From IMG/VR virus record IMGVR_UViG_3300025930_000007, positions 1-64,000 of that record: 64,000 bases of DNA, one strand, 5' to 3'. The notes under the pieces are model-generated. The model ran no database searches, was not told the DNA's origin, and saw only the letters and a list, made by a program, of their open reading frames with translations. The translations under genes were made by a program, and so were the position numbers. Below are positions 1,001 through 48,211 of this stretch, piece after piece (the stretch's first letter is position 1; every line of letters begins with the position of its first letter).

Positions 1001-1104
1001 TTGCTACCGAGAGCTCCTTGAAGTAGACTTTGTAAGTCGAAGGTCTCCTCCCCCGGGATCTTCTTGATCCGTTAACGGATGTCCGCCCAAGGGAGAATCC
1101 CTTG
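1001..1104 (+). promoter_or_regulatory. Sigma70-type promoter plus conserved leader element, copy 1
   Basis: TTGCTA-17-TAGACT; hairpin GAAGGTCTC/CTCCCCC/GGGATCTTC; TCCGCCC at 1082-1088; SD and TTG start inside CCAAGGGA-GAA-TCCCTTGG hairpin. Confidence 0.8.
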
Positions 1105-3165
1105 GCCTCTCGCCTCCCAGACGGTTCCATTCAACTCTCCGATGGACGCATCGTCTACGCGAACTCCGTCATTTTGGGCGCTGATCTCTGCGAGATCGTG
1201 CCTCTGTGCGTTCCGCCGCCGGCGTGGCCCTTCGTTTCGGGTGGCGGCGGCGGTGGCGCGGGCCCGCAAGGCCCCGCGGGACCTGCAGGGTCGGGCGGCG
1301 GCGGTGCCGGCACGCAAGGCCAGCAGGGTTTCCAGGGAACAAATCCCGGACCTGCAGGACCGCAGGGTAATAACGGACCTCAGGGCTTCCAGGGCCTGGC
1401 AGGATCTGGAGCCCAGGGCCCTCAAGGTCTGCTTGGAAGCCAGGGAAATCAAGGGACTGCCGGAACCCAAGGCTTCCAGGGCCTGACCGGCGCCGGAGTT
1501 CAAGGCGCTCAGGGAAATCAGGGAACCGCGGGAACTCAGGGCTTCCAGGGCTTTCAAGGCGGCCTGAACCCCGACCTCTTCGCTTCGACCCGCATTGTCA
1601 GTTTGATCCCGGGAGAGGGGACAGATCTCACCATCTCTGCGGCTATCGCGGCATTGCCAGCCGCGGGCGGTGACATTTACGTCAAGCCCGGGACATATCC
1701 GATCGCAGCCTCGCTGGACTTCACCACCAAAGTGGTGAGGATCCGCGGCGCTGGGACCAGCATGAACTTCGCAACCGGACCTACGACACTGGTTCCTGCC
1801 GCAGGAATCTCGCTCTTCAAAAACGGCGCTGCGGGCTGCTCTATCGAGGACATGACCATTGAGGGAGACAACACCTCAGCCCAGGTCCTTTACGAGGGCA
1901 GCACCGATATCCGCTTCACCCGCATAGACTGCCACGATGTTGCGGGCATCATCAAGGGGACGCCTGAAGCCCTCTTCCGCGACTCCTTCGTGAACATCCC
2001 GAGCGGTCCTGCAGTCGGCGACCGGTTCTTCTGGCAGGGCGGCGCGGCCGGCGGGACGCTCATCTGGGACAATCTGGAAGTTTTCATCACCGGGTCGGGA
2101 GCGACCTTGATGAGCGGCGTCACGGCAGGCGCCAACGGTCCGACGTTCAAGGTCGTGAACTCCTACACCGGCGGCGGTGGCGGCGGCGGTGCGACGAACT
2201 TCTGGTTCGCCCAGGTCATCGACTGGGTCAACTTCGATTTCGACAATGGCCAGTTCGAGATCAGTGGCGCCCGGAACAACATCGTCAACTGCAACTTCCT
2301 GGACTGCTCGATCAAGTTCCTCGCCGTCTGGAACTTCGTCTCCAATTCCAACTTCTCCCAGGGCGGAACGAATGGCGGCGGCGGGATCTTCGATGCTCAG
2401 TTGTCCTTTGTCCAAAGCCTTGCCGGATTCCCGATCCAGAGCACCGTGACGGGGTGCAACTTCTACGGAAACGCTGTCTCCAACAAAGGTATCTCGATCA
2501 CGGGTCCCGCCGGTGCCTCGAGCGTTTCGGTGACGATCAGCGGCTGCAACTTCAGCAACCACACGCTGAACGACATCTACATCTCTGCCGGCCTGGACAT
2601 CATGATCACCGGATGCGTCTTCGACCACAGCACGGGAGCGAATGTCGACGCGATCGAGATCGTGGCTGGAGCGTCCTTCTCCGGCAGGGTCAATATCGTC
2701 GGGAATACCTTCGGAAGCGGCTATGCGCTTACCGTCAGTACCGCAGGGTTCAACGGCACCATCGCGAACAATATCAACCTTCTCACCGTATCCGACACAG
2801 GGAACGGCAACATCTGGACGGGCAATACAAATTTCGATCCCAGCGGAATCACCGGCAGCGCGGCATCAGACCTCATCAACGACACCAACGTCATCGGTCC
2901 AGTTGCGGCAGACACTCTTCTGAATCTTTTCTATCGGACTGTTACGGTAGACGCGAGCGGAGCTGCCCGGACCATCACGCTACCCACGGCCGCTTCCGCC
3001 AAGTGGCGGAAGTACATCATCAAGAAGGTCGATGCCTCGGCCAACACGGTTACCGTGGACGCGGACGGCGCCGAAACGATCGATGGCGCTCTGACATACG
3101 TTCTGATCGCGCAGTATCAGAGCGTCGAGATCCAGAGCGACGGTTCGACCTGGTGGATCATCTAG
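1102..3165 (+). CDS. Collagen-stalk fibre protein 1 with pectin-lyase-like beta-helix head
   Basis: Shared N-terminus MASRLPDGSIQ..PPPAWPF, G-X-Q repeats, 'AAIAALPAAGGDIYVKPGTY' tailspike-type motif, C-terminal 'TITLPTAA..KKVDASANTVTV..ETIDG' domain. Confidence 0.85.
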   Translation: MASRLPDGSIQLSDGRIVYANSVILGADLCEIVPLCVPPPAWPFVSGGGGGGAGPQGPAGPAGSGGGGAGTQGQQGFQGTNPGPAGPQGNNGPQGFQGLAGSGAQGPQGLLGSQGNQGTAGTQGFQGLTGAGVQGAQGNQGTAGTQGFQGFQGGLNPDLFASTRIVSLIPGEGTDLTISAAIAALPAAGGDIYVKPGTYPIAASLDFTTKVVRIRGAGTSMNFATGPTTLVPAAGISLFKNGAAGCSIEDMTIEGDNTSAQVLYEGSTDIRFTRIDCHDVAGIIKGTPEALFRDSFVNIPSGPAVGDRFFWQGGAAGGTLIWDNLEVFITGSGATLMSGVTAGANGPTFKVVNSYTGGGGGGGATNFWFAQVIDWVNFDFDNGQFEISGARNNIVNCNFLDCSIKFLAVWNFVSNSNFSQGGTNGGGGIFDAQLSFVQSLAGFPIQSTVTGCNFYGNAVSNKGISITGPAGASSVSVTISGCNFSNHTLNDIYISAGLDIMITGCVFDHSTGANVDAIEIVAGASFSGRVNIVGNTFGSGYALTVSTAGFNGTIANNINLLTVSDTGNGNIWTGNTNFDPSGITGSAASDLINDTNVIGPVAADTLLNLFYRTVTVDASGAARTITLPTAASAKWRKYIIKKVDASANTVTVDADGAETIDGALTYVLIAQYQSVEIQSDGSTWWII

Positions 3166-3175
3166 TGAGCGTGCG

Positions 3176-3955
3176 ATGAGTTTTCTTGAATCGAAGGTTA
3201 AAGGATCGATCGCGGTCGGCCGTGGGGATGGGGTAGGAATCCTTCCGGTTGGACCAGATGGCCAGGTCATTATAGCCGACAGCACTCAGCCTCTGGGAGT
3301 CAAGTACGGTAACAATGCCAGCGCCGTTGCAATGTCCATGGAGTCCCTCGCCCTCACGCAATACTTCTCAAATCTCGGGCTCAAGCCAAGCGTGCAGATC
3401 AAGTCCATGACGGAATCTCTGGACACGTTCGATGGCGTGTCCGGGGCCGGCGTGTTCAGCTATGACGGATCTCGCGCCAAGGAGACCGCCATCGCGTCGA
3501 CGTATGCCCGCTATGGTCTTGGTGCCGCGTACACGAAACTGTTGATGATCGTCGGAATGTTTCGCATGTCCACGGCAAACATGGGCATCTGGATCGCCGA
3601 CACGCTTGCGGCAAACGTACCGCAGGACGGAAATATATTCCTGAACGAGATGAACACCAATCGGACATCTCTTTATAAGCTTCCTGCTTTCTCGAACGTG
3701 ACATCGGATACGGATGTCAGCAGCACCCCGCAAACGTGGGCGCCGTACCCGATGATGGCAATTCACGTTGACCTGTCCCTGGCAACGCGCCGGATTCGCT
3801 GCTACTACCGTTGGAACGCCGAAATGTGGTGGCCTGTTCTCGACGTCGCGGACAATACGAAGATCGCCATTACGCAGATGCAGCACGCAGGCGTGCAGTT
3901 CAATTCGGGTCCAGGATTTGTCGGGTGCCCATTTGGAATTTGGGCTGACCTGTAA
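3176..3955 (+). CDS. Fibre-associated protein
   Basis: N-terminal 'KGSIAV..LPVGPDGQVIIADS' resembles a recurrent phage fibre repeat. Confidence 0.65.
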   Translation: MSFLESKVKGSIAVGRGDGVGILPVGPDGQVIIADSTQPLGVKYGNNASAVAMSMESLALTQYFSNLGLKPSVQIKSMTESLDTFDGVSGAGVFSYDGSRAKETAIASTYARYGLGAAYTKLLMIVGMFRMSTANMGIWIADTLAANVPQDGNIFLNEMNTNRTSLYKLPAFSNVTSDTDVSSTPQTWAPYPMMAIHVDLSLATRRIRCYYRWNAEMWWPVLDVADNTKIAITQMQHAGVQFNSGPGFVGCPFGIWADL

Positions 3956-4002
3956 GAAAATTCTGGTACCGGAACGACAAGATGAAGGCAGTGTTATCTC
4001 GC

Positions 4003-4111
4003 TTGCATTCCATCCGGTCATACACTAGAATTTCCTAGTCGGAGGTCTCCTCCCCCCCCTGAGGCCTCCCTGATTTCGAACTGTCGATCCGCCCCCGACC
4101 GGGGTTTCATG
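4003..4111 (+). promoter_or_regulatory. Promoter plus conserved leader element, copy 2
   Basis: TTGCAT-17-TAGAAT; hairpin GGAGGTCTC/C-rich loop/GAGGCCTCC; TCCGCCC at 4088-4094. Confidence 0.8.
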
Positions 4112-7954: not shown

Positions 7955-7994
7955 GCTAGAAGGAGGGGGCGGCATTTCCGCCCCCTCCTTTAGC
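7955..7994 (+). terminator. Long hairpin, probable terminator
   Basis: GCTAGAAGGAGGGGGCGG..CCGCCCCCTCCTTTAGC inverted repeat right after the stop. Confidence 0.6.
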
Positions 7995-8008
7995 TCACAT
8001 TATTCCTC

Positions 8009-8113
8009 TTGCTGTAAAGCTTGATGCCCTGTAGAATCTCCTAGTCGGAGGTCTCCTCCCCCGGGACCTTCTGGATCCTGTAAACGGACGTCCGCCCAAG
8101 GGAGATTCCCTTG
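8009..8113 (+). promoter_or_regulatory. Promoter plus conserved leader element, copy 3
   Basis: TTGCTG-17-TAGAAT; GGAGGTCTC/CTCCCCC/GGGACCTTC; TCCGCCC at 8091-8097; SD and TTG in a hairpin. Confidence 0.8.
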
Positions 8114-10156
8114 GCTTCTCGTCTACCAGACGGCTCAATTCAGCTCTCCGACGGCCGCATCGTCTACGCCAACTCTCTCATCCTTGGCGCTGATCTCTGC
8201 GAGATCGTGCCTCTGTGCGTTCCGCCGCCGGCGTGGCCCTTCGTCTCGGGCGGCGGCGGCGGCGGCGCGGGCCCGCAAGGCCCTGCGGGACCTGCAGGAT
8301 CTGGCGGCGGCGGTGCCGGAACTCAAGGGCAACAGGGCTTCCAGGGGACGAATCCTGGACCTGCAGGTCCGCAGGGAAATAATGGGCCTCAGGGCTTTCA
8401 AGGCTTGGCAGGATCTGGAACCCAGGGCTTCCAGGGAAGCAGTGGGCTTCAGGGAAATCAGGGAAACCAAGGTCTCACTGGAAGTCAGGGAAACCAGGGG
8501 AACCAGGGGAATGCCGGCGCTCAGGGCAATCAGGGAAATCAAGGAACCGCGGGAACCCAGGGCTTCCAGGGATTCCAAGGCCCATCGAATGCTGGTGCCG
8601 ATATCTTCGCAGCCACTCGCGTGGTCAGTCTCATTCCTGGCGATGGAACGGATCTGACCATTGCCGCGGCGATCGCGGCGCTGCCGGCTGAAGGCGGCTA
8701 CATCTACGTCAAGCAGGGGACCTATCCACAGGCCGCGACGTTGACGATGCCGGACAAACCCGTCATCATCAGGGGCTCGGGCGATGGCACCGTCATCTCT
8801 CTCGGCGCGAACGCCATCCCGGCGTTCACGATTCCCACTGGCTTGAGCGTCCGGCGCGACTATGTGTTCGAAAACATGCTCGTCACTGGCACCTCGGTTG
8901 CCAATCAAAAGATCTGGAGCATCGAGGATGCCAATGGCTTCGGTGTGGTCAGGGCGAGCCATGTAAACTCCACGGAAATCCAGTTCCCCATCCACATCAC
9001 GGACGGCTTCGGAACCGAGATTACGACCGTCTGCCTGGACGACTGCCACTTCCGCTTGCTGGCCGATGGATCGAGCATCCTGGTCAATCAACCAGCGCTC
9101 ACGGCCGTGCCCACGAACGTGTGGATGCAGCGCGTCTGGTTCTATACCGAATACTCCGATGCGATCACTGGAGCGCTTACCAGCGATGCTGTCTTTGCCA
9201 CAAGCATCAACTTCCTGGGAGAAGATTGCGTTCTGGCCATCGGCACGAGCTCGATTGTCGGGTGCTTGAATCTTACGGACAGCCATATCTTCAACTTCGG
9301 CCCGGGCGCGAACCCGGTCATCTCAGTATTTGGCGATGACTTCGGCATCATCCCCGACTGCCTCGTAGGCTGCAGCGGTCAGTTCGTCAACTTCAGCTTG
9401 GAAGGAAACGGCTGCGCCGTGATTGGCGGCAGGTATCGCTCCTGCAGTTTCACGGATGGAGCGATCAGCTTCTTCACGGACATATTCTTCTTCACTGATC
9501 TTACGGTGGAGTCGGCCGTCATCATCGGCACCGGCAATACATTCATCAAAGGCTGCGAGTTCACGAACAAGGGCACAACCTTCGTCCTGGACGGGAACTT
9601 TGCATCCATCGTCGGTTGCGAGTTCTCTCTGATCAGCTATGTCGGGCTGACCTCCGTCATCCGGACTACGAATGGTACCGCGAAGATCGCCGACAACCGC
9701 TTCGTGGCGAACACGGTGCCGGCGATCCTGGAAGCTGGTGCCATCTCCACGAACAATATCGACAATAACCGGTGGGCTACCAATCCGACGCTTCTGAATG
9801 ATTCCGACGCGGTCGTGAACGGCTTCAAGCGGAAGAACATCACTGGCGGCGCGACCGTAGATGCCTTGACGGCGGTCTTTACGCACGTAAATGACAAAGG
9901 TTTGGCCGGGGCAGGAAGCCTCAAGAACACTGGCGCGAATGACCTGACGGTCAGACGGACCGTGACCGACGGTTACGGAACGACCGACTTCCAGGAAGAT
10001 GTGGTTCTGTCGGGCGCGTCGATTCAATGGCCCATGGACACCGCCATCGGGACGGCGTTCTCAGCGTATGTGTCCTTCACGATCTCCGTCAAGTCGACCA
10101 CGCCGGGGAGTCCGACGACCTATGATCTCAGGCACTCTTCGACGGGAGCATACTGA
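8111..10156 (+). CDS. Collagen-stalk fibre protein 3, beta-helix head plus C-terminal 'KNTGAN' domain
   Basis: Shared anchor, G-X-Q repeats, 'IYVKQGTY' motif. Confidence 0.85.
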   Translation: MASRLPDGSIQLSDGRIVYANSLILGADLCEIVPLCVPPPAWPFVSGGGGGGAGPQGPAGPAGSGGGGAGTQGQQGFQGTNPGPAGPQGNNGPQGFQGLAGSGTQGFQGSSGLQGNQGNQGLTGSQGNQGNQGNAGAQGNQGNQGTAGTQGFQGFQGPSNAGADIFAATRVVSLIPGDGTDLTIAAAIAALPAEGGYIYVKQGTYPQAATLTMPDKPVIIRGSGDGTVISLGANAIPAFTIPTGLSVRRDYVFENMLVTGTSVANQKIWSIEDANGFGVVRASHVNSTEIQFPIHITDGFGTEITTVCLDDCHFRLLADGSSILVNQPALTAVPTNVWMQRVWFYTEYSDAITGALTSDAVFATSINFLGEDCVLAIGTSSIVGCLNLTDSHIFNFGPGANPVISVFGDDFGIIPDCLVGCSGQFVNFSLEGNGCAVIGGRYRSCSFTDGAISFFTDIFFFTDLTVESAVIIGTGNTFIKGCEFTNKGTTFVLDGNFASIVGCEFSLISYVGLTSVIRTTNGTAKIADNRFVANTVPAILEAGAISTNNIDNNRWATNPTLLNDSDAVVNGFKRKNITGGATVDALTAVFTHVNDKGLAGAGSLKNTGANDLTVRRTVTDGYGTTDFQEDVVLSGASIQWPMDTAIGTAFSAYVSFTISVKSTTPGSPTTYDLRHSSTGAY

Positions 10157-17782: not shown

Positions 17783-17906
17783 TTGCTTCCTCGGCTCCTT
17801 AAGCGTAAACTTCTAGTACGTCCCGGGCCTCCCCCGGCCTTGGGCTGAGCATTCCAGAGCGTCTTTTCCGCCCAATCTTGGATTATGTCATGAGGCGGAA
17901 TTGATG
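17783..17906 (+). promoter_or_regulatory. Promoter plus conserved leader element, copy 4
   Basis: TTGCTT-17-TAAACT; CCCGGGCC/TCCCCC/GGCCTTGGG; TCCGCCC at 17867-17873 can pair with GGCGGA just before the start. Confidence 0.75.
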
Positions 17907-24824: not shown

Positions 24825-25111
24825 CGATGGCGATTCCGGGCGAAGGTTACGTCGATCGCGGGAAGCTCCAATACTTCGGTGGCCGACCATTCGTCTCGGA
24901 TGGGGAGTTCAAGGCTCCCGCGGCCCCTTGCGAACACGCCCTGCTGATCGGGAAGGTCAGGGAAGACTCTGAAATGGGAGTCTGGCGCATCCCGCTGACC
25001 TACGTCATCTTCAAGGGGCATCCCGAGGAATATAAGACTGAAGGCTACTGCGTCCATTGCGCGCTGGCCTATTTGATGCGGTCTCAGGGACGCGAAGAAG
25101 GGATCCCTTGA
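24821..25111 (+). CDS. Small hypothetical protein with C..H..CxxC
   Basis: ATGA overlap with the upstream stop. Confidence 0.55.
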   Translation: MTMAIPGEGYVDRGKLQYFGGRPFVSDGEFKAPAAPCEHALLIGKVREDSEMGVWRIPLTYVIFKGHPEEYKTEGYCVHCALAYLMRSQGREEGIP

Positions 25112-25202
25112 AAGTCCTGGCGCTAAGGATTAGACTCTAATTAGCCCGTCCTCCCCAGGCGGGTTTTGTTTCAAGGCTCCGCCCGGTTGAAGGCGCATCG
25201 TG
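25108..25202 (+). promoter_or_regulatory. Promoter plus conserved leader element, copy 5
   Basis: TTGAAA-17-TAGACT; AGCCCGTC/CTCCCCA/GGCGGGTT; TCCGCCC at 25178-25184. Confidence 0.75.
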
Positions 25203-29400: not shown

Positions 29401-30105
29401 AAGATGATCGAGGAATGGCCGATCCTCGATTACGACCGCATGGAAGATCCTCGCATCCGGGCGATCTATGCTGGACCCCTAGTCTCCGTCGTCATTCCGA
29501 CCTACAAGCGGGCCGAGCTGCTTAATCGAGCCATTTCATCGGCGCTTGCCCAGGATTACGCCAATATCGAAGTGATCGTCGTCGGTGATAAGTGCCCTGA
29601 TCTTGCGGAACTGATACCGCTCGGTCCTCCGCCAGATCGCGTCCGGCTGTTCAATCTGGTCCACAATCATGGCGCCGGCGGTGCCGTTCCGCGCAATCAT
29701 GCGATCGCCGCGGCCGGCGGTTCGCTCATCGCCTACTTGGATGACGACAATGTCTGGAAGTCGGATCACGTCTCATCGCTCTATACGGCGATGATGGAAA
29801 ATGGAGCCTCGTTCGCCTTTTCATCCATGGAAGTGAACGGTACCGACCTCAAATTCTCGGAACCGAAACACGGTAGCATCGACACGTCATGCATCCTCCA
29901 TCGGAAGAACCTCGTGGAGAAGTACGGAGGCTGGAAGGACCGGACGAAGGCAAATTACTATCACGATTGGGAGTTCGTGAGTCGCTGGGTGAATGGTAGC
30001 GAGAGGTGGGTGGCTACCAGGAAGCCGACGCTGATCTATAACGCGGAGACCTGCGGACAGCGTGAATTCCTCGAGGCGCTTGCCTTGTCGAAGGCATCCA
30101 AGTAG
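26470..30105 (+). CDS. Multi-domain glycosyltransferase with five GT2-type modules
   Basis: Five strand-1 plus DxD-type sets: LISVYTGTYN/LDHDD, LTVIVPSIP/FVDDDD, VSFIVL/MNNDA, VIVIAKDEE/IDPDE, VSVVIPTYKR/LDDDN. Confidence 0.85.
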   Translation: MPIAGIKLLIIGPAIQLPYECKVISDSAAILPTIAQFQPDVIMTTAFIPGSLNSATFELRKRWIHVPANTSPEAARQAVENCYLSNIWAVHQYQAANPLISVYTGTYNTGDYLRDTYQSLRDQTYANWEWVVIDDHSNDGTWERLEALAKDDIRVRPYRSGKRLEKIGAVKDQATRLSKGVYLVELDHDDMLTDFALADIRDAFEKNPEVGFVYSNSSNFFENGQFHRFDDEFWKNRYRETEYRGKKWLECLNPDIYDRFGPDFQQQFGWFLTVGPNHVRAFRAKTLFELGGYNPSLPVADDWDLYARFFLYSKCHHVDKMLYLYRFKDNWANTTFTRNKAIQDHLQLGRGNYAAAFKAFNEQRQRSASTGGGELLLTVIVPSIPSRMESLYGVLNDLFKQADGKPVEIVCLLDNRKSNLSEKRNQAIKNAKGRFISFVDDDDKIEPDYVDQILEAIKTNPKADCVVFDVLVHGYTPEPKLCAYGIEYEQGENETSYLRKPNHVMAYRTEISRKHEYRKDLSAISEDTEWAERASKDIQSQARISKTLYHYFYNPKTTTQLMPAPGQRTLKDVSFIVLEAAETALTKRCIQSIREHAPGSEVVYVSNGVISCPDRKADVQVDFNVNLGFAAGCNAGAAAATRPILCFMNNDAAFVDDTPAKLLAGLSDANPITAPFSNKAKPPQGDIPRAAVPKTDVFPDMVVGLCMMIPKALFQELDGFDPDLLTYEDDEFCRKAAIKGFKPKVVANTWVDHERHETFKKLGLDVDKVMAKNALIYRKKNPVIRVIVIAKDEEKALPGFFKQFEQITRDWCVLDTGSKDRTEILAKDLGCRVEKGPFEDFASARNDAVSRFGAGADWIIMIDPDERLDEHTLKHLKELLYRTTDDILYSMLQAKYPDGSIRRFVSKPFIWRNKPEIKWVFKVHEKLIGSKHQAVVVNSMNTHLIELHEDGRRQAASGFYDALMKAEPYFTDPAYKRKMIEEWPILDYDRMEDPRIRAIYAGPLVSVVIPTYKRAELLNRAISSALAQDYANIEVIVVGDKCPDLAELIPLGPPPDRVRLFNLVHNHGAGGAVPRNHAIAAAGGSLIAYLDDDNVWKSDHVSSLYTAMMENGASFAFSSMEVNGTDLKFSEPKHGSIDTSCILHRKNLVEKYGGWKDRTKANYYHDWEFVSRWVNGSERWVATRKPTLIYNAETCGQREFLEALALSKASK

Positions 30106-30185
30106 AATTCTGAGACAGCAGGAAGGTCTCCCCCGACCCGTCCCTGGTGATTTGCTTGGTCCGCCCCCGTCAGCCTATACCCATG
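30080..30185 (+). promoter_or_regulatory. Promoter plus conserved leader element, copy 6
   Basis: TTGCCT-17-TAGAAT (the -10 overlaps the GT stop codon); GGTC/TCCCCC/GACC; TCCGCCC at 30160-30166. Confidence 0.7.
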
Positions 30186-30742: not shown

Positions 30743-30835
30743 TTGCCCATAAGTCATTCTAGCGCTACACTTCGTTAGCCCTTTCCCCAAAGGGTCTTTG
30801 GCATTAGGTATCCGCCCTCGGCCCGTGTGGTGATG
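30743..30835 (+). promoter_or_regulatory. Promoter plus conserved leader element, copy 7
   Basis: TTGCCC-17-TACACT; GCCCTTT/CCCC/AAAGGGT; TCCGCCC at 30811-30817. Confidence 0.75.
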
Positions 30836-32328: not shown

Positions 32329-32460
32329 TTGAATTTCATAGCCCATCCCGTATAATCAAGTCGCCTTCCCCCAAGGCACCTGTAGTGGTCTGGCAGACAA
32401 TTCCGCCCAACGAGACAATATGTCTATTTGCAACTTGAGTGGCGGAGAAAAAAAATCATG
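32329..32460 (+). promoter_or_regulatory. Promoter plus conserved leader element, copy 8
   Basis: TTGAAT-16-TATAAT; GCCTT/CCCCC/AAGGC; TCCGCCC at 32402-32408 can pair with GGCGGAG (the SD) before ATG 32458. Confidence 0.75.
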
Positions 32461-38555: not shown

Positions 38556-38557
38556 CC

Positions 38558-38899: not shown

Positions 38900-38907
38900 G
38901 AGGATCT

Positions 38908-39258: not shown

Positions 39259-39269
39259 AGGATGAAGCG

Positions 39270-39542: not shown

Positions 39543-39555
39543 CAGGGGGATCACG

Positions 39556-39822
39556 ATGAAGATCAAGCTCTCGGATCTTCCGGTAGGGAACTGTTTCACC
39601 GGAAAGAACGGTGAAATGAAGAAGAAGATCGGCGATCGGAAGGTCGCGACCGTCGGAGAGATGAGCGGTCGCGTCCGGACCCGCAAGGTGAAGGGTAATC
39701 CCGAAGTCGAGCCTTCGCCGTGTTCGCTCCGGCTGTTCGGAGTCGGATTGCGTCGGCATCCCGACCTGATGGTGGAGATCGGCGACGGTAACCCCCTGAA
39801 GAACAAGAAGAACAGCAAATAG
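39556..39822 (+). CDS. Small basic protein
   Basis: K/R-rich; SD present. Confidence 0.65.
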   Translation: MKIKLSDLPVGNCFTGKNGEMKKKIGDRKVATVGEMSGRVRTRKVKGNPEVEPSPCSLRLFGVGLRRHPDLMVEIGDGNPLKNKKNSK

Positions 39823-39836
39823 ACGAGGGGAAATTT

Positions 39837-40241: not shown

Positions 40242-40253
40242 TGATCGAGGAAT

Positions 40254-41417
40254 ATGTTGAAGGCGCGTCCTCTCATCCAGAACTCCCTGTTTCCGCTGCG
40301 GCGTGGGCCGTCCTTGGGAGCCGAGATGCTGATCGAGCTCGGCCAAACGGTCGCGTCTCCCAGTGTGCCTCCGCCTACCGCCCCCAGGGTTTCTACTCCT
40401 ACGACGCCTGCAACTAAGACTCCGCAACTGGTTCAGATCTCGGCGGATGAAGGAAACCTCGTCATCAAGACCGTCGAGAACATCGTCAACTTCTCCCAGG
40501 ATTTCCCTATCGAGTTCACTTCCTACTGTCCCACCGACCGCTGGCAGGAGACGCTGACCCAGGTCGGCACCTGGAGCCATGAGGTCGAGCGTCAGATCAA
40601 GGCGGGGGCCCAGACGGTATCGGTTCCGGCGGAGGCGATCTTCCGTCTGGTGGATCTCGAGAAATGCGCCACCGCGGCACGGGAGTCTCGCTTGACGGCG
40701 GCAAAATGGGCCTTCAGCCTGTCCGCCGGCGGGACGATAGCCAACGTCCTCTTCGGGCTGTCATGGATCACGGTACCGACGTACATCGCGGGCCTTGCAA
40801 TTCTCTTCGGAGGCCCGTTGATTGCGAGAATGAGGGCTCAGCCGGAAGATCCCTACAAGCCGTCGATCGGTTGCACGAAATCTCATCAGCTCTCGGGTTG
40901 CGCGGCGCCATACGAGAGCGAAGAAGAGCAAAAGATGATCAAGCTGGTGGAGCGCGTCATTCTGGTCGAACGGCCAGGCCGACGCGAACACTGGTGGGGA
41001 TCGGTCGACTGCAATCCGGGTGGCGCCCAGGCGTCGACGTGTCTCAAGAAGGGACGCCTTCGCGTTCGTATCGAAGGCTGGGAGGGCGACACGGTGAATC
41101 CGGCTCCGGGATGGGAGTTCTCCACGGACTGCGAGGAAGGCTCTCTCAACGTGATCGCCGTCATGGAGACTGGATCCGAAATCCGCGAGACTGGTTTCGG
41201 AGCGGTTCCGGAGAAATCCAGGCACAAGGAAACCTACTGGGTCGAATATATCGGACCGAAGACCGGCGGCATTATCCGTCGCGCCGGTCCCTTCGGCTGT
41301 CCAATGGATACCCGCGATCATGCCATCGATGACGGCGGGATCACGAAGAAGGGCCAGGACGGCGATTACGTGCTTCTCAACATGGAAGGCGAGGAAGTGC
41401 CGGTGCCCAAATCATGA
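40254..41417 (+). CDS. LGA/LGQ-leader membrane protein, family B, with Cys-containing C-terminal domain
   Basis: 'PSLGAEMLIELGQ'; two TM segments. Confidence 0.75.
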   Translation: MLKARPLIQNSLFPLRRGPSLGAEMLIELGQTVASPSVPPPTAPRVSTPTTPATKTPQLVQISADEGNLVIKTVENIVNFSQDFPIEFTSYCPTDRWQETLTQVGTWSHEVERQIKAGAQTVSVPAEAIFRLVDLEKCATAARESRLTAAKWAFSLSAGGTIANVLFGLSWITVPTYIAGLAILFGGPLIARMRAQPEDPYKPSIGCTKSHQLSGCAAPYESEEEQKMIKLVERVILVERPGRREHWWGSVDCNPGGAQASTCLKKGRLRVRIEGWEGDTVNPAPGWEFSTDCEEGSLNVIAVMETGSEIRETGFGAVPEKSRHKETYWVEYIGPKTGGIIRRAGPFGCPMDTRDHAIDDGGITKKGQDGDYVLLNMEGEEVPVPKS

Positions 41418-41917
41418 CGACGTTCGCGAAAGGTCTTGCAAGCGGAACGATTCAGGCTCCGCCGAAGACATCCTGGTGGCCGCGTCATACGCGGACCATG
41501 ATGAGGTACCTGGCGTTGTCCGGGGCAAAGACACCGAATGCGAAGATCGAGATTCAGGGTAATATGCAGAAGGGCGCCCAGGAATGGGAGGCCATGATTC
41601 CAAAGGTCGCCAAGCAAGGGCTGATGATCGAACATGCCGCTCTCGAGATCGCACTGGTTGATGCCGTGCGCCTGAATAAAGAGGCGGATATCGATGGTAT
41701 CGGCAGAAAGCTGCTGGACAATGCCGGTCAGCTTGCGGCGGTCCTGGGGATCGCGGTCAAGGAGTTTCCGGAAGAGCATTTCAGGCGGCTGTTCATGGAT
41801 CACGTAGGTTTGTATGCTGGTAGTGTTCGAAAGAAAATAGAAGGCGTGGTGGTGAACAGCGCCGAAATCGAGTCGAACATGCTGCAGCTTGCGGACTTTA
41901 CCGCAGAGTGGCTTTAG
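41414..41917 (+). CDS. Helical-bundle hypothetical protein
   Basis: ATGA overlap; spaced His residues in helices. Confidence 0.7.
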   Translation: MTTFAKGLASGTIQAPPKTSWWPRHTRTMMRYLALSGAKTPNAKIEIQGNMQKGAQEWEAMIPKVAKQGLMIEHAALEIALVDAVRLNKEADIDGIGRKLLDNAGQLAAVLGIAVKEFPEEHFRRLFMDHVGLYAGSVRKKIEGVVVNSAEIESNMLQLADFTAEWL

Positions 41918-41926
41918 AGGGACGAT

Positions 41927-43651
41927 ATGGCTGAATACTTCATGGGACAAGAGCTCATCCAGGGCGAGCTCCCGGCCAATTCGCCCAAGCCCGCTGCGAC
42001 TCCGCCGGAAGGCGTGATCATGACCGATGTCTCCCGGGACGGATGGAGCCGCCGATACATCTACATCGCCATGGCCGGAGCCGCTCCGGAGGAAATTCTG
42101 ATCTCGGAGACTCCTCCGACCCAGAAAGCTCGCGTTTCCGGCGCCGCGGTGGCGGTCGAAGATGATTTCTCTTCTTCGATGGAAGGCGTTTCGGTACCTG
42201 ACGGCGTGATTCTGCCGGAAGGTGCCGTGCTTCCCGAAAATGCCGTCTTCAGCGGCATCCCTTCTCAGGGCAGGCCCACCATGGGACGGCCGGCGGTTCC
42301 GACTGCTGCTCCTAGAATCGCGGTTCCCGTCCAGGGGCAGAATGTGCCGCTGGTCGCGCGTCAGAATCCGCTGCCGCAGCCTCAGCAGTCTTTCCGCACG
42401 AATATTGCGGTTGCGGCTCCTTCGTCGGTTCCAACGGTGAGCATCCAGAAAGCAGCTCCTCCGGCTCCCGTCATGGTTCAGCCGCAAGGCCCTCTTCCTG
42501 GAGTGGAAGTTCAGGTGCCCTTCATCCAGACGCCGATCGACAAGTCTACAGACATACCGAGCAACGTCAGGATCTCGAATTCCATCGACTCTCTCAGGCC
42601 GGCCGTGGCTCAATCCGTTATGGATTCGCCTCGTCCGGTCCAGCAGGAGCGCCCCGCCATGATGCTCGGGCAGATCTCCAGGCCTCTTCCACTGACCACC
42701 CAGGAGGGCAGGAAGGACACTTATCCGGTCAGCAACCCGATCGCGCCGGCAGGGCCCATGGGCGGAATGAGCCAGATCGGAGGATCTCCGGGCTTGAGCC
42801 AGAATCAGATCCCGCTGCGGCATATGGGTCAGACCCCTGCGCCTGCTCCCGCGCCTGCTCCCGCGCCTGCTTCGACGGGCGGCAAGTGCCCGGGTGCTGT
42901 GGAAATGCCGGATGGCACCACGATCGAGCCGGATCAGTACATCACGCTGGCAGCGCTCTGCGAGCTGATGCCGTTCCTCGCGAGCACGCTCACCGACCTG
43001 CAGGCCAAGAGCCTGGCTCCAGGACAGAAGGTCTCCGTCGTCGGCCAGCAGCCTAATGGCCAGACCGTCGTTCCCACGTCCGCGTCGTTCGGTCCAGCCG
43101 GACAAGGCGGCCCGATGGGCCGTGCCGTGGGTGGCATGGGGAGCTTCGGCGGCGGCGGTGGGTCGCCCGGCCCGGCAGGATCTCAGGGCCCGAGGGGCCT
43201 CACCGGTCCCGCGGGACCGGGCAGCATCACGGAACCTCCCGTCGTCAAGGTGGACGGAGACTTCGTGGCAGGCCCCGGCGCCTTCGTCCCGGTCCCCGGC
43301 ACGGCGGTGCCGTTCTCGATGTCCACGGCAGGGGTCGCCGAAGTCAAGGTCCTGGTCACTCTCGGCACCGGGCCCACACAGCAAGCCGAGAACGTGCAGC
43401 TCGGGATCCGAGTCAACGGAACCGACTACCCGCTTACCGTTCGCCTTCTTCACACGTTCGCGGCCAACGTCGGGGAGTTCGACATCGGCCAGTGCTTCCT
43501 CTTCCCGATCCAGCTCCCGGCCGGCAGCTACACCGCGGAATTGCTGCTCCGTGGTCTCCTGCCGGGGGAATTCGGCGGCGGCACCGGCGCTTCGGCGGCG
43601 GTGAACGCGAATCCGTCGATCCCGCTTATCATCACTGTTTCCCATAACTAG
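41927..43651 (+). CDS. Fibre-like protein: long Pro-rich pro-region with MGQ/LGQ sites, divergent anchor, mini-collagen and head
   Basis: 'EMPDG..LAALCELMPFL' resembles the fibre anchor; GPAGSQGPRGLTGPAGPG. Confidence 0.75.
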   Translation: MAEYFMGQELIQGELPANSPKPAATPPEGVIMTDVSRDGWSRRYIYIAMAGAAPEEILISETPPTQKARVSGAAVAVEDDFSSSMEGVSVPDGVILPEGAVLPENAVFSGIPSQGRPTMGRPAVPTAAPRIAVPVQGQNVPLVARQNPLPQPQQSFRTNIAVAAPSSVPTVSIQKAAPPAPVMVQPQGPLPGVEVQVPFIQTPIDKSTDIPSNVRISNSIDSLRPAVAQSVMDSPRPVQQERPAMMLGQISRPLPLTTQEGRKDTYPVSNPIAPAGPMGGMSQIGGSPGLSQNQIPLRHMGQTPAPAPAPAPAPASTGGKCPGAVEMPDGTTIEPDQYITLAALCELMPFLASTLTDLQAKSLAPGQKVSVVGQQPNGQTVVPTSASFGPAGQGGPMGRAVGGMGSFGGGGGSPGPAGSQGPRGLTGPAGPGSITEPPVVKVDGDFVAGPGAFVPVPGTAVPFSMSTAGVAEVKVLVTLGTGPTQQAENVQLGIRVNGTDYPLTVRLLHTFAANVGEFDIGQCFLFPIQLPAGSYTAELLLRGLLPGEFGGGTGASAAVNANPSIPLIITVSHN

Positions 43652-43659
43652 GAGGCATC

Positions 43660-44091
43660 GTGGCCACGCTCGTTGAGAAGACCGTCCTGGTGAACAGCAA
43701 AGTCCAGGATCTCTGGGGTCTGTTCATGGACCTTCGCCGGGCGGATTTCAAGGTCCGCAACGTGGGCATGGACGTTCGGGGGACTTACGTTCACCTCGAG
43801 CTCAATGAGGAGAAGGATCCGACGCCGATCGTGGAAGCCTGGGTTGGGAAAGAACCGGCAAAAAGTTCTCTCTTGGTGAAAGAGATCCGTCAAAAGGAGC
43901 TCGAAAAGGTGAAGGAAGAAGAGCAGATCCGCCTTCAGGCTCAGATCGAGGCAGAACGAAAGGCAGAAGCAGCGAAGCAGAGATCGCCGGAAATAGTCGT
44001 GAATAGTGCGCCGCCGGAAGTCTCCGTCAAGGAGACGGAAACCGCGGAGAAAGTTGGAATCTTGAAGAGGATCTTCAGGAAATTCTTCTAA
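43660..44091 (+). CDS. Hypothetical protein with coiled coil
   Basis: AGGAGG SD, GTG start. Confidence 0.7.
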   Translation: MATLVEKTVLVNSKVQDLWGLFMDLRRADFKVRNVGMDVRGTYVHLELNEEKDPTPIVEAWVGKEPAKSSLLVKEIRQKELEKVKEEEQIRLQAQIEAERKAEAAKQRSPEIVVNSAPPEVSVKETETAEKVGILKRIFRKFF

Positions 44092-44094
44092 GAA

Positions 44095-44730
44095 ATGCTG
44101 TCGTATAAACCCGTCCTGGCCTCGCGACATCGGCTCGGGCAACTCGAAACGCTGACGAGCGGATTGACGTCCAATTTCGCCAAGCAGATCGTGACCGAGG
44201 CGGAGCCGGTCGTCCGCAAGATCATCAAACAGGAACGGAACAAGTACGCCCAGGCATTGATCGGAGCCATTCCGTTCGGAGTCATCTCCGCACTGGCATA
44301 CGTCGGAACGAAGTACATGATCCCCGATGAGAAGGCGATGGCCAAGACGGTGGGCTATGTCACATCCGCCATCGCCGCTGCGGGCGGCGCTTGGTGGACT
44401 GTTTCGAACCTGACCGAGGATATTCGTCCCGAGCCTTCCAAGGGAGGGCCGACTGCCGCAGATCCTTATGTCCAGCAAGCATCGCAGGCTATTGTGACGG
44501 CTGCGGAACCCAAGGTGCGGGCTATCGTCGACGACGAACGGCGGAAGCTGGCAGAAGCCGGCATTATGGCTCTTCCATTCGCTATCGCGTCGCTGGGGGC
44601 ATTCCTTTCGACCATGTTCCTTGTGGATCCCGAGAACAAGGGGACCAAGGCCATCGGATATGCTGGGAGTGCCCTGCTACTCGGCGCTGGAGCCTGGTTC
44701 GGGCTTCAGAAAGAACTGGAGGCCGCGTGA
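44095..44730 (+). CDS. LGQ-leader four-TM protein with an internal duplication
   Basis: 'RHRLGQ'; 'IVTEAEPVVRKII..ER' and 'IVTAAEPKVRAIV..ER' repeats. Confidence 0.8.
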   Translation: MLSYKPVLASRHRLGQLETLTSGLTSNFAKQIVTEAEPVVRKIIKQERNKYAQALIGAIPFGVISALAYVGTKYMIPDEKAMAKTVGYVTSAIAAAGGAWWTVSNLTEDIRPEPSKGGPTAADPYVQQASQAIVTAAEPKVRAIVDDERRKLAEAGIMALPFAIASLGAFLSTMFLVDPENKGTKAIGYAGSALLLGAGAWFGLQKELEAA

Positions 44731-45137
44731 TCGCGCAGGCTCAAAGAATTCCCAGCCGAGACATCTTTATGGGCGGCGGAGGCCCTTTCGGAAGACAGGG
44801 AGCATCGCTTGGCCAGTGGGGAGAGATCATCAGCATTGCGACCGGACTGCTTCAAGCTACTCCTGCCGTCATCGCGACCTATCAGGCAAAGCGTGCGGCA
44901 GATCGGGCAAAGCAGGACAAGGAAAGGCAAGAGGCTGCTTTGAAGGCCCAGGCTGAGGCAGACGCAGCAAATGCTGAAGCTGCCAAAGCCCAAGCAATGG
45001 CTCAGCAGGGTCTCACGCCGCAGGGAACACCTATTGCGAACCAGAAGCCTTTCGGAGTCGATCCGGTGGTACTGGCTGTCGGCGGCCTCGGAATTCTGGG
45101 CCTTGGTGCGGCTCTCTTTATGGCTTTGAAGAAATAG
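44727..45137 (+). CDS. LGQ-leader Ala-rich membrane protein
   Basis: GTG at 44727 after GGAGG; 'GASLGQ'; C-terminal TM + KK. Confidence 0.7.
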   Translation: MIAQAQRIPSRDIFMGGGGPFGRQGASLGQWGEIISIATGLLQATPAVIATYQAKRAADRAKQDKERQEAALKAQAEADAANAEAAKAQAMAQQGLTPQGTPIANQKPFGVDPVVLAVGGLGILGLGAALFMALKK

Positions 45138-45144
45138 TGATGCT

Positions 45145-45576
45145 ATGAAAACACTCTTCACGACCGGCTTCAGCAGACCCTCCTTCAACCCGATGCTGGG
45201 ACAGGAGATCATCACGTCTTATGATGAAGGCCAGTCTTCGGGAGGGATCCCGAATCTGTATACTTCCGTCGATCAGGGTCCTGCAGCGACAACTGTCCCA
45301 GGGCTTGTGACCGATCGGGATCTTTATAAGTCTCCCAGTTCGACGGCATCCACGGACTTTGGGAAAATCCTTCAGGAGATGGTCAAGGCCGGTTCGGCGA
45401 GCTATGCCGGCTACACGAAGGCTCAGATCGCTGAAGCTGCAGCCAAGCAGAAGGCTGGCCTTCCTACAGGACTTCCGAAAGTGCTTCCGCAACCTTCCGG
45501 CATCAGCCCCAATACGGTATTCTTGGTCGGAGGACTCGCGGCGGCGGTGATCATTGCGGTAATCGCGGCAAGCTAG
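45145..45576 (+). CDS. LGQ-leader membrane protein
   Basis: 'FNPMLGQ'; C-terminal TM. Confidence 0.75.
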   Translation: MKTLFTTGFSRPSFNPMLGQEIITSYDEGQSSGGIPNLYTSVDQGPAATTVPGLVTDRDLYKSPSSTASTDFGKILQEMVKAGSASYAGYTKAQIAEAAAKQKAGLPTGLPKVLPQPSGISPNTVFLVGGLAAAVIIAVIAAS

Positions 45577-45577
45577 G

Positions 45578-46996
45578 ATGCATTCTATCTCTGGACGTCA
45601 CATGTTCTGGCAGGCTCCCGCTCAAGGCGGGAGCCTTCGGACAATCCCATTTCGTCAGGGCGGTCGTTCGGTCATGCTGGGCGGTGGAATGTTCATGGGC
45701 CAGATGCCCATCAACAGGCTCGACCAGGTCAGCATTCCGGCGATCATCGGACGTATCCAGATCGAGCCCGCGGTGCAGCAATATCTCGATGATCTGAATA
45801 AAGAGAATGCGGGCTTGGGCGCGATCTGGGCTGCCAGACCTCAACCAAAGCCGGTACCGAGTTTCCCCCCGATGACCGAAGCGGAAAAACAAATCCTCTT
45901 CGAGATCTCCAAGAATCCGACCGATGAGGAGCTGAAGGACCTGGCAACCATCGACAGTCTCTTCAGCCAGAATTTCCAGGCGGATTATCTTACGACAAAC
46001 GAGGTTTGCTATTACGCGGACAGCGGCAAACTGCCGGGGGTACGCGTGTTTGCCAAGGCGCCAGCTATCATTCCGACTACGGGGCAAGAAGGTGCCGAGT
46101 ACGCTGTTGCCCATTATTTTAATCCCAAACCTATTCCAATGTTCGGTAAATGGGGCGGGAAGAAGCCGCCTCCCCCTCCGGATAAATCCTTTACCAACGA
46201 CAAGTTCTGGTGCCCTGATCCATCCACTACGGAACCGACGCTATTCCTGGATCATGTGCGGCAACTTGGAAAGTTCGGGTCCTTCGCCCAGATGTTCGGG
46301 ATCGATGTGAACAAGACATGGGGGCAGATCAAGTTACAGACAAAGAATGGCTTGATCGTCCTGAACGTGAAATCGTCGTATCCTCTTCCTCCGCCGCTCG
46401 ACATGGCGCCAGATTTTGTCTGGAACATGGCCGCGGTTCCTCATCTTCCGGAGATGGTGAACCTCGGCGTTGTCGTCGATCCGGAGGCCTTCCGCTCCTG
46501 GTATACGATGGCAGTGCTCGAGAAGTACAACGACGCGGCCGATGCTATCATTGCCGAACAGAAGAGGAAGGCGAAGAAAGCAAAACGCAAGGCTATCCTG
46601 AAGGCCGTCGGCTTCGCAATCGCTGGAGTCGTTCTTTCCTTCATCGTTCCAGCCATCATTGCAGCAGCCGTCGCCGCGATCAAAGCGGCCGTGGACGTCT
46701 ACATCCAGGCCAAGCAGCGCGCGGAAGCCGCGAAGGCGATGGCCGAGGCCGCCAAGATGTTCGAGGAGGATGCTCCGGCCTTTGCAGCCGAAGTCCAGAA
46801 GACCGCCGACATGATGGATTATGCCGTGGCGCAGGAAGAGGCGAATGCGCCGCTCACTCAAGAGCAGCTTGATGCGATTCAAGAGGTCAAGGATAACCCT
46901 GAGCCCGGCACCGGCCCCACGACGGGACAGGCCCTCGTGACGGGCGGCGCCGCAGCGGGAATCATCGCGGCGATGATCGCCATCTTTCATCGGTGA
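45578..46996 (+). CDS. Large MGQ-leader membrane protein
   Basis: 'GGMFMGQ'; internal and C-terminal hydrophobic helices. Confidence 0.75.
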   Translation: MHSISGRHMFWQAPAQGGSLRTIPFRQGGRSVMLGGGMFMGQMPINRLDQVSIPAIIGRIQIEPAVQQYLDDLNKENAGLGAIWAARPQPKPVPSFPPMTEAEKQILFEISKNPTDEELKDLATIDSLFSQNFQADYLTTNEVCYYADSGKLPGVRVFAKAPAIIPTTGQEGAEYAVAHYFNPKPIPMFGKWGGKKPPPPPDKSFTNDKFWCPDPSTTEPTLFLDHVRQLGKFGSFAQMFGIDVNKTWGQIKLQTKNGLIVLNVKSSYPLPPPLDMAPDFVWNMAAVPHLPEMVNLGVVVDPEAFRSWYTMAVLEKYNDAADAIIAEQKRKAKKAKRKAILKAVGFAIAGVVLSFIVPAIIAAAVAAIKAAVDVYIQAKQRAEAAKAMAEAAKMFEEDAPAFAAEVQKTADMMDYAVAQEEANAPLTQEQLDAIQEVKDNPEPGTGPTTGQALVTGGAAAGIIAAMIAIFHR

Positions 46997-47637
46997 GGTT
47001 CATGAACACTATTTTTCTCGGCGGAGTTCAGCCGCGATCTGGCTTCCGGATTGGCCAGCGCTTCGTGATGGGACAGACTCTCACGAAAGCGGACCGCGAT
47101 CACTATCTCGTCGCCGTCAATCGCGCCCTCTCGGAAGCGGATGAGATCGATGCGTGGCTGCTCGCCAATCCGCTCGCAAAGCTGAAGCCCACGGAACTGG
47201 AGATGGCCCAGGGTTCCGATGTCGTCATCTCTCCATTCTTCACCAAGTGGATCAACTTCCAAGCTCAGCGGCCGGGCATGGTCGCCTTCCGGGATCGTCT
47301 TCAGAATGAAGACCCCAGCACTTGGGGATCTCTCTCGGATGCCGAGCACAAGATCTTCGGTTGGGTCAACGTAGTCGACCAGATCTATGGTTCATTCAAG
47401 GCGGATCCCAAGAATCTGACTGCTGGAAGATGGGTAGCTGGCGTAAGGCAGCCGGATCCGGTTTCCACGGGTGCCGCGACGACAGCACCTGCCATGCCCC
47501 TCGAGCCCGTCACAGTCCTGGGCTATGAGCTTCCTCCGACGATGTTGGGGATGCCTACGAAAGTAGCCCTGGTAGTGGGGACCATGGGTTTGATCAGTAC
47601 CGGAGTAGCTCTCTGGGCCCTATTCCGGAAGAAGTAA
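46993..47637 (+). CDS. MGQ-leader membrane protein
   Basis: 'RFVMGQ'; C-terminal TM + RKK. Confidence 0.75.
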   Translation: MRFMNTIFLGGVQPRSGFRIGQRFVMGQTLTKADRDHYLVAVNRALSEADEIDAWLLANPLAKLKPTELEMAQGSDVVISPFFTKWINFQAQRPGMVAFRDRLQNEDPSTWGSLSDAEHKIFGWVNVVDQIYGSFKADPKNLTAGRWVAGVRQPDPVSTGAATTAPAMPLEPVTVLGYELPPTMLGMPTKVALVVGTMGLISTGVALWALFRKK

Positions 47638-47642
47638 GGCTC

Positions 47643-48077
47643 ATGGGCTGCAGCCCTGGCGCTATTTCCTTCGGAAAAGAACTCAGCCAATTCCTTTCCA
47701 ACCTCCTCTACATGAAAGAATGGTGGACCCATGGAGGATGTTGGACGCTTGCCCAAGCACTTCACGAATACCTGGGAGACGATCGCACGGAGCTCTGGGG
47801 TATTGGAAGTCCATTTGCCGGAACTGCGTATCACGTGGCAGTGAAGGCGGATGACTGTTTCTTTGATGCGGACGGAGCTTCTACGCTTGAGCAGATTCTG
47901 AAGCGCTGGAAAAAGAAGTTTCCGGGGCAATACTTGATTGCGAGGAAGCTTTCGGACAATGAAAAGAAGACCCTTCTCTGTAAAGATTCCGAAGACTTCG
48001 CTGTCGAGGAAATGGTCGATCAACTGACGTTAAAGCTAGGCCCATCCGAACTCCTCTGGAGGCGATTTTTCTCTTAA
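47643..48077 (+). CDS. Small protein with papain/transglutaminase-like Cys-His-Asp pattern (candidate protease)
   Basis: 'GGCWTLAQALH', 'YHVAV', 'FFDADG'. Confidence 0.6.
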   Translation: MGCSPGAISFGKELSQFLSNLLYMKEWWTHGGCWTLAQALHEYLGDDRTELWGIGSPFAGTAYHVAVKADDCFFDADGASTLEQILKRWKKKFPGQYLIARKLSDNEKKTLLCKDSEDFAVEEMVDQLTLKLGPSELLWRRFFS

Positions 48078-48084
48078 AAAGGGC

Positions 48085-48211
48085 TTTTCTTACAGGCTTC
48101 CCTATAGTAATATTCAGGCAGTTCCCAAGGCGTCCTCCCCCGACGCCGCAAGAGCTGCCTCACGGCAATCTTGCATTGAACTAAATCCGCCCGCGGAGAT
48201 CCTTTGCAATG
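48085..48211 (+). promoter_or_regulatory. Conserved leader element, copy 9 (promoter match weaker)
   Basis: GGCGTC/CTCCCCC/GACGCC; TCCGCCC at 48186-48192; TATAGT/TAATAT upstream. Confidence 0.7.

Follow-up and report, generated by a model that had tools for sequence, protein, structure and literature searches.

A hairpin-heptamer leader RNA motif heads a subset of operons in a clade of uncultured soil jumbo phages

Introduction

The viral contig IMGVR_UViG_3300025930_000007 (Ga0207701_10000001; 266,490 bp, 59% G+C) belongs to an uncultured soil jumbo phage. In its first 64,000 bases (bases 1-64000, the stretch analysed here and referred to as the window), nine sites carry a leader element that consists of a promoter, a hairpin with a C-run in its loop, the heptamer TCCGCCC and a start codon. 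It is well supported that this element is a real and previously undescribed leader RNA motif, and that a clade of such phages has a regulon defined by it. The element is strand-specific, conserved in structure, subject to strict rules of position and absent from known families.

The contig has no DNA- or protein-level relative among cultured phages (megablast, tblastn), a protein-profile search of GTDB genomes gave no match and hence no clue to the host, and no IMG/VR entry other than the contig itself was found as a relative. The product of the gene behind the eighth copy of the element has 40 metagenomic homologues with 53-91% identity, and the comparison set consists of 10 syntenic metagenomic contigs (L numbers below), fetched from part of the Logan/ENA list, whose proteins adjacent to the element are 54-91% identical to those of the window.

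Results

Nine leaders with one layout

A sequence-only reading of the window had proposed nine sites with a common layout and an invariant TCCGCCC. This was borne out, with coordinates recovered at all nine (Table 1), and the −35 and −10 hexamers, hairpin, spacer, TCCGCCC and start codon follow one another in the same order at every site. The promoters have the pattern TTGnnn, N17, TAnAnT, with a spacer of 17 nt in eight of the nine copies and 16 nt in element 8, and the −10 hexamers among the copies are TAGACT, TAGAAT, TAAACT, TACACT, TATAAT and TAATAT. These promoters, called σ70-like in the earlier reading, are weak (8 of 12 matches to the consensus), and because the matches are so modest a generic promoter scan did not flag them; even so, relatives conserve them.

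The hairpin begins 6-16 nt past the −10 hexamer in all nine copies and has 4-9 bp, with an added outer helix in element 6. Its loop is a pyrimidine C-run (CUCCCCC, UCCCCC, CCCC(C) or CUCCCCA in the window). The heptamer follows after a spacer of 12-38 nt, and the start codon lies a further 11-16 nt past it in the nine window copies, whilst the distance from promoter to heptamer is variable (39-72 nt). The start codon that the earlier reading placed after the heptamer is that of the main gene in most copies, but in copies 4 and 8 it is that of a short upstream open reading frame (uORF). In element 1, the Shine-Dalgarno (SD) sequence and start codon lie within a hairpin (CCAAGGGA/UCCCUUGG). Copies 1-3 are paralogous duplicates and not independent of one another; the A-U to G-C compensatory change that had been claimed between copies 1 and 2 is correct, and lies at the second stem pair.

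Table 1. Coordinates of the nine leader elements in the window, with the genes that they head (aa, amino acids; CM, covariance model score)
Element	Span	Strand	−35	−10	Hairpin	TCCGCCC	Start codon or uORF	Gene or operon headed
1	1001..1104	+	TTGCTA, 1001-1006	1024-1029	1039-1063 (9 bp, loop CUCCCCC)	1082-1088	TTG 1102	687-aa collagen-like fibre gene (PHROG tail fibre); CM 26.8 bits
2	4003..4111	+	TTGCAT, from 4003	4026-4031	4041-4069 (9 bp, loop CUCCCCCCCCU)	4088-4094	ATG 4109	322-aa fibre paralogue; CM 19.2 bits
3	8009..8113	+	TTGCTG, from 8009	8032-8037	8047-8071	8091-8097	TTG 8111	681-aa fibre paralogue and 9.6-kb operon
4	17783..17906	+	TTGCTT, from 17783	17806-17811	17822-17844	17867-17873	two-codon mini-uORF 17885-17893 (ATG TCA TGA); main ATG 17904	
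5	25108..25202	+	TTGAAA, from 25108	25131-25136	25143-25165 (8 bp, loop CUCCCCA)	25178-25184	GTG 25200	243-aa gene
6	30080..30185	+	TTGCCT, from 30080	30103-30108	core 30125-30138 (GGUC/GACC + outer CAGG/CCUG)	30160-30166	ATG 30183	183-aa gene
7	30743..30835	+	TTGCCC, from 30743	30766-30771	30778-30795 (7 bp, loop CCCC)	30811-30817	ATG 30833	operon: 148-aa protein, stand-alone receiver domain, 185-aa protein
8	32329..32460	+	TTGAAT, from 32329	TATAAT, 32351-32356	32363-32377	32402-32408	13-codon uORF 32420-32461 (MSICNLSGGEKKS), TGA overlaps main ATG 32458	15.6-kb operon 32458-48077, via its uORF
9	48085..48211	+	TTTTCT, from 48085	48108-48113	48129-48147 (6 bp, loop CUCCCCC), nested in outer helix	48186-48192	ATG 48209	154-aa gene

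Conservation in relatives and covariation of the stem

In the relatives, copies stand at the positions orthologous to elements 5, 6, 7, 8 and 9 and before fibre genes, which brings the total to 35 instances, 33 of them distinct, in the window and the 10 relatives. Orthologues were found for element 5 (L124_3566, L130_626, L134_187 and L135_4556), element 6 (L132_2770, L135_9731 and L124_8239) and element 9 (L137 16704-16769), and nine orthologous copies for element 7. No copy departs from the heptamer sequence, and every loop is a C-run, with a single variant, GUCCUCC, in L124_8239.

The stems behave differently from the loop and heptamer. Those of family 8 (element 8 and its orthologues) include GCCUU/AAGGC, GCGCCU/AGGCGC, ACGCCC/GGGCGU, GCCCCC/GGGGGU, GCCCUC/GAGGGU and GCGCCUUU/AAAGGCGC. 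Covariation was assessed in five family-8 leaders of equal length, in an ungapped alignment blind to structure: all 30 cells of the 6-bp stem are paired (100%), four of the six stem pairs have changes on both sides, and pairing falls to 37-57% when the partner is shifted by one column, whilst the −10 and loop columns are invariant. When 25 distinct hairpins are counted from the loop outwards, each stem position shows at least four base-pair types, and the mean stem is 6.96 bp compared to 3.74 bp after flank shuffling (Fisher p ~1e-12). These two approaches were used in place of whole-leader alignment with MAFFT/RNAalifold, which misaligned the 5′ hairpin because stem and loop lengths vary; for the same reason an alignment fitted to the covariance model (CM) is only 70% paired.

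Compensatory changes keep the pairs, as in a structured cis-regulatory RNA, and the earlier suggestion of selection on RNA structure is supported by stems that covary in the leaders of the ten relatives around an invariant loop and heptamer. The arms change in sequence and covary, the loop does not vary and every copy points in the direction of transcription; the hairpin therefore probably acts as RNA, as a protein operator on DNA would have kept its arms conserved.

Rarity and strand specificity

The linear pattern TCCCC-N14-44-TCCGCCC-N11-18-DTG occurs nine times in the window, where dinucleotide shuffles lead to an expectation of 0.33, and none of 100 shuffles reaches nine matches. The heptamer alone is not enriched (16 versus 21.9 expected), and nine of the ten plus-strand heptamers in the window lie inside these leaders; therefore it is the placement that is non-random. 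The tenth makes up the 3′ arm of a strong hairpin resembling a terminator, with which operon 2 ends (7955-7995, GGAGGGGGCGG/CCGCCCCCUCC). An antisense match at 43725-43783 was rejected as a chance occurrence: it is unconserved, has no promoter and opens an open reading frame (ORF) of only 31 codons.

A CM built from the copies identifies exactly 35 instances in 240 kb (window and relatives, both strands), all on the sense strand, and separates them cleanly, with true copies at 19.2 bits or above and everything else at 15.3 bits or below. It found no copy in the contig between 63.7 and 73.6 kb, and in 729 kb of unrelated viral contigs it matched nothing except element 9 itself. The model and pattern counts are strand-specific and confined to leaders, which answers the concern that the element might be equally common in coding or antisense positions.

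The element corresponds to no recognised RNA family, as the sequence-only reading had supposed. At gathering thresholds Rfam 15 matched only the transfer-messenger RNA (tmRNA) and tRNAs and nothing at the nine sites, and at E values up to 5 over 1-56000 it gave two weak, unrelated matches, neither of them at the nine sites. A gapped pattern search of IMG/VR DNA for the loop and heptamer returned, among the matches listed, only random ones. One GC-rich contig (L024 1017-6048, IMGVR_UViG_2585428106_000001) has three palindromic repeats of ~120 nt rich in CCCCCTCCGG/CCGGAGGGGG, a chance match to the pattern; this three-copy repeat was rejected as a homologue because it is an unrelated palindromic element.

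Placement on transcription units

Genes in the first 56 kb are nearly all on the plus strand and densely packed, and the element is found only at the first cistron of each transcription unit, never at internal genes. Five fibre paralogues in the window (1102, 4109, 8111, 12303 and 16519) share a 46-aa N-terminus; the three that follow a promoter have the element, and the internal ones at 12303 and 16519 lack it. The element marks transcription-unit starts, not gene families. It does so for a subset of units, as had been noted earlier, given that four other promoters in the window (~22395, 23218, 26430 and 53890) are without it. The proposal that it heads structural operons is borne out in part: copies 1-4 precede collagen-like tail-fibre genes, and the genes behind copies 5-9 have no recognisable function.

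A sixth fibre paralogue, outside the window and on the opposite strand (contig ~87 kb, L142 3001), has the heptamer, an SD and an ATG, but no hairpin; it is preceded by a promoter-like site and a C-rich tract. The six paralogues combine a common N-terminal domain (RLPDGSIQ..PPPAWPF) with differing C-terminal parts, and from their sequences look like a swappable receptor-binding repertoire.

The receiver domain in the element-7 operon (PF00072, 31290-31727, E=1e-24) stands alone, and is conserved in most of the fetched relatives, with none seen in L135. The promoter of element 6 overlaps the end of the gene for a 1211-aa protein (26470-30105) with four GT2 glycosyltransferase domains, and relatives have several GT2-type glycosyltransferase genes plus methyltransferases, a gene content that suggests glycosylation of fibres or the virion. 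Directly 3′ of fibre genes lie two 68-aa ORFs (10156-10362 and 14653-14859) with sub-threshold matches to zinc ribbons of the Lar/Elf1/TFIIB type, possibly encoding nucleic-acid binders. In one relative a methyltransferase/restriction-type gene and a DDE transposase replace the element-9 region (L138 16366-19724).

Start codons, uORFs and complementarity to the heptamer

In each of the 33 distinct instances, 11-18 nt separate the heptamer from the first start codon. If the main gene is more distant, as it is for element 4 and family 8, this codon is that of a uORF, which begins at +11. The family 8 uORF has 11 or 13 codons, and its frame and its TGA/ATG overlap with the main gene (ATGA) are kept in 11 of 11 relatives (orthologues in L123, L124, L126, L128, L130 and L132-L136), with the frame surviving a 6-nt indel. 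The ATGA overlap suggests translational coupling of the uORF into the 15.6-kb operon.

First cistrons often have a TTG or GTG start or a weak or absent SD, whereas internal genes have a canonical GGAGG. The heptamer and its neighbouring bases are complementary to initiation regions in several ways: UCCGCC to GGCGGA in element 4 (17894-17899, the SD of the main ORF) and in family 8; CCCAUG to CAUGGG in family 7; CC-AAGGGA to UCCCUUGG in elements 1 and 3, a stretch that includes the UUG start; and UCCG to CGGA in element 9.

Three simpler interpretations were tried and rejected. Pairing of the heptamer with the 3′ tail of 16S rRNA is incompatible with its position 5′ of the SD, beyond the rRNA end, and with the use of GGAGG by internal genes. 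Kissing between the loop and the SD is feasible in only some copies and is not a general rule. Lastly, a tRNA-like or acceptor-arm reading of UCCGCCC(A)CC fails on an unconserved CCA and on the lack of an adjacent T-arm.

Translation-related genes beyond the leaders

The phage encodes a tmRNA (56589-56948, 116 bits), directly followed by a tRNA array (56950-62416) with ~22 genes in the window; at least 11 further tRNA genes lie in the next 10 kb (L139 14000-18600). Within a coding region (51634-51725) ARAGORN also reported an unusual tRNA whose anticodon has four bases; it has no Rfam support and is probably a false positive. In addition to tRNAs, the 10 kb past the window encodes a Ro60/TROVE protein, DnaJ, peptide deformylase and ribonucleotide reductase. 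A weak match to YrlA (Y RNA-like; 30 bits, threshold 69 bits) at L139 11502-11611 lies 5′ of the Ro60/TROVE-vWA gene (L139 12275-13999; the Ro60 and YrlA-like region corresponds to contig ~65.2-66.9 kb), and the two may constitute a phage Ro-Y RNA module.

Discussion

Comparison with known systems

The element belongs to none of the families to which we compared it (SAS/ESAS, nut/put/LoaP, Com/RegA and PeSL). In concept it comes closest to SAS/ESAS, a system of Cluster K mycobacteriophages. SAS is a 13-mer (GGGATAGGAGCCC) that contains the SD, lies 3-7 bp from the start codon and is present in 11-19 copies per phage genome, in the non-structural genome half and at many internal genes, with a suspected function in translation (PMC3203893). 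ESAS consists of 17-bp inverted repeats that are conserved in sequence, do not covary and are thought to be DNA sites (PMC3203893). The likeness lies in a short asymmetric motif, repeated in one orientation shortly before the start codons of certain genes only, often with an inverted repeat upstream, and conserved across related phages. In contrast, the UCCGCCC of the present element is located 11-18 nt upstream of the start, 5′ of the SD, only first cistrons behind a promoter have it, and the hairpin covaries as RNA.

The λ nut and rrn boxB-boxA sites, HK022 put and the LoaP leader are leader RNAs that follow a promoter, with a hairpin and a linear box, one per operon. They resemble the present element in pairing a hairpin that has an important loop with a short box just 3′ of the promoter, but here the loop is a C-run, not purine-rich (GNRA-like) as in nut/rrn, and the box is tied to the start codon. 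No match to boxA (CGCUCUUA / UGCUCUUUAACAA) with up to two mismatches and none to RfaH ops/JUMPstart (GGCGGTAG) with up to one mismatch was found in the nine leaders; at two mismatches, two ops strings at chance level appear in elements 4 and 7. The pyrimidine loops are unlike an N-bound boxB, and no N-like protein was recognised in the window. Nor do the leaders resemble intrinsic terminators or attenuators, as a T-run follows only hairpin 5 and is lost in L134, L130 and L135.

In Mu Com/mom, the T4 RegA regulon and the MS2 coat-replicase system, a small phage protein switches translation at a ribosome-binding site held in local structure, and RegA acts on many mRNAs as a regulon. A locked ribosome-binding site with a recognition site 5′ of it or overlapping it would be common to these systems and the present element, and RegA also matches its regulon scale; the differences are that there is no sequence similarity and that here an additional, predicted 5′-terminal hairpin with a conserved loop is present. 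The PeSL of T4-type phages are terminator-type stem-loops whose sequence is conserved to promote recombination (PMC2839356, PMC4122927). They too are repeated intergenic cassettes of a σ70-like promoter and stem-loop at mosaic boundaries, but in our leaders the stems differ from copy to copy, constraint falls on the loop, and the unit includes a heptamer linked to the start codon. C-run loops are also found in stand-alone small RNAs (sRNAs), namely 6C RNA (RF01066) and the UCCC-loop sRNAs of Firmicutes. Such a loop is able to pair with G-rich, SD-like sequences, as in the present element; here, in contrast, there is no Rfam match, and the loop could pair with the SD in some of the nine leaders but not in others.

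A model for leader function and its alternatives

The reading that we tentatively prefer is that the element is a bipartite leader operator through which a trans-acting factor controls translation of the first cistron, and possibly mRNA stability too. Transcripts from nine or more promoters in one gene block (window 1-48 kb) would begin with it as a cis-regulatory RNA, with transcription starting, according to the promoter predictions, next to the hairpin, a position that fits a 5′-terminal stem-loop. One module would be this hairpin, whose stem is free in sequence and whose loop must be a pyrimidine C-run, (C)UCCCC(C); the other would be a single-stranded UCCGCCC box immediately before the ribosome-binding site that serves the ORF translated first. 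The initiation region of the first cistron would be intrinsically poor or locked, by start codons that are often non-AUG and a weak SD, and often because its SD or start is base-paired to the heptamer's 3′ half or to bases beside it. Both C-rich modules would be read in trans by a factor that sets ribosome loading, either an RNA-binding protein of the phage or its host or a G-rich RNA with GGGCGGA/GGGGAG, whilst the 5′-terminal hairpin would also shield the mRNA end. The operons with the element would in this way be co-regulated post-transcriptionally as one regulon. We infer recognition in trans from the invariance of both the loop and the 7-mer. The earlier reading had offered a nut-like antitermination site or a translational lock as the basis of a late-gene switch; of these two, the fixed spacing to the start codon, the presence of uORFs and the complementarity to the SD favour action on translation of the first cistron.

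Several observations weigh against the trans-read operator. The 74 kb of sequence read from this genome (the window and the next ~10 kb) yielded neither a trans factor nor a complementary G-rich RNA; no window protein is recognisable as RNA-binding, and the only candidates are the receiver domain and the two sub-threshold zinc-ribbon ORFs. The pairings of the heptamer are invariant or heterogeneous among families and lack covariation support. The sixth fibre paralogue, with its heptamer and no hairpin, indicates that the two modules are separable. Furthermore, because internal fibre paralogues do without the element, its restriction to first cistrons fits a function at the level of the transcription unit, such as antitermination, equally well.

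A processive antitermination or RNA polymerase (RNAP) modification site of the nut, put or LoaP-like kind, in which hairpin and box recruit an elongation factor or act on the RNAP so that the polymerase reads long operons, would account for the single copy per transcription unit just 3′ of the promoter, for the hairpin-then-box order known from rrn boxB-boxA and for operons of 9.6 kb (element 3) and 15.6 kb (element 8). It is a serious rival, though rather unlikely in our judgement, since the nine leaders lack boxA and ops, terminators inside the operons or in the leaders do not exceed the chance level of the scan, orthologues do not keep the T-run that follows hairpin 5, none of the window proteins was recognisable as N-, Q- or NusG-like, and the strict 11-18 nt spacing to the start codon and the conserved uORFs would be left unexplained. 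In a leader working purely in cis, the 5′ hairpin would stabilise the mRNA against 5′-end-dependent decay and UCCGCCC would be a built-in anti-SD or standby element that tunes the first cistron. The start of the hairpin 6-16 nt past the −10 in every copy and the complementarity of the heptamer to SD or start regions in most families are in keeping with such a leader. However, a stabiliser needs no conserved loop and a cis anti-SD no invariant 7-mer, and the fixity of both over 33 distinct copies, down to 54% protein identity and with drifting stems, argues for recognition in trans; we consider a purely cis-acting leader distinctly improbable.

Recognition of the heptamer could also be by a sequence-specific endoribonuclease, for which UCCGCCC would be a processing signal, trimming the leaders and so activating or inactivating the message. 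The heptamer does lie at a constant distance from the ribosome-binding site, and sense coding sequence has a 5-fold deficit of TCCGCCC relative to synonymous shuffles (3 versus 14-15 expected), which makes this heptamer the second most depleted of 42 with the same composition, alongside C5 runs. This depletion, however, is partly common to the reverse complement and to C-runs generally; because relatives share ancestry and C-rich 7-mers are generally avoided, it is no more than suggestive of potency on RNA, for the preferred reading as well. With no nuclease candidate found and the hairpin loop left unexplained, we think there is little chance that the element is a processing signal. Least credible of all is an element that works on DNA, be it a set of operator sites, a minimal promoter for a phage RNAP or a PeSL-like recombination module. 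The heptamer is always near gene starts, and mosaic junctions coincide with the cassettes, as in L123, where a P6-like promoter heads a fibre-type leader and gene. Yet the arms of the inverted repeat are unconserved and covary, the opposite of a protein operator, the promoter-heptamer distance varies over 39-72 nt whilst the start-codon distance is fixed, and within the window no gene-start heptamer occurs without a promoter and hairpin upstream.

Implications for jumbo phage biology

To our knowledge, few phages have RNA leaders that serve a whole regulon, and almost no such leaders are known from uncultured jumbo phages, which dominate the viromes of soil. The clean comparative support for this one, with its invariant loop and heptamer, free stems and strict positions, makes it well suited to a covariance model, to assays and to a search for the factor, and the element would be a ready marker of operon starts in this phage clade. 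An unlikely but far-reaching variant would have the C-rich modules as an address label, by which a phage factor (a protein or a G-rich small RNA with its gene in another part of the 266-kb genome) selects the phage's late or virion mRNAs for ribosomes. If that were true, it would amount to a phage-private translation-initiation code layered over the host Shine-Dalgarno system, in keeping with a genome whose gene content includes a tmRNA and over 30 tRNAs. Should the phage itself encode the factor, the leaders would reveal the way in which a huge phage times its fibre and virion genes, or gives them precedence, whilst using host-type promoters.

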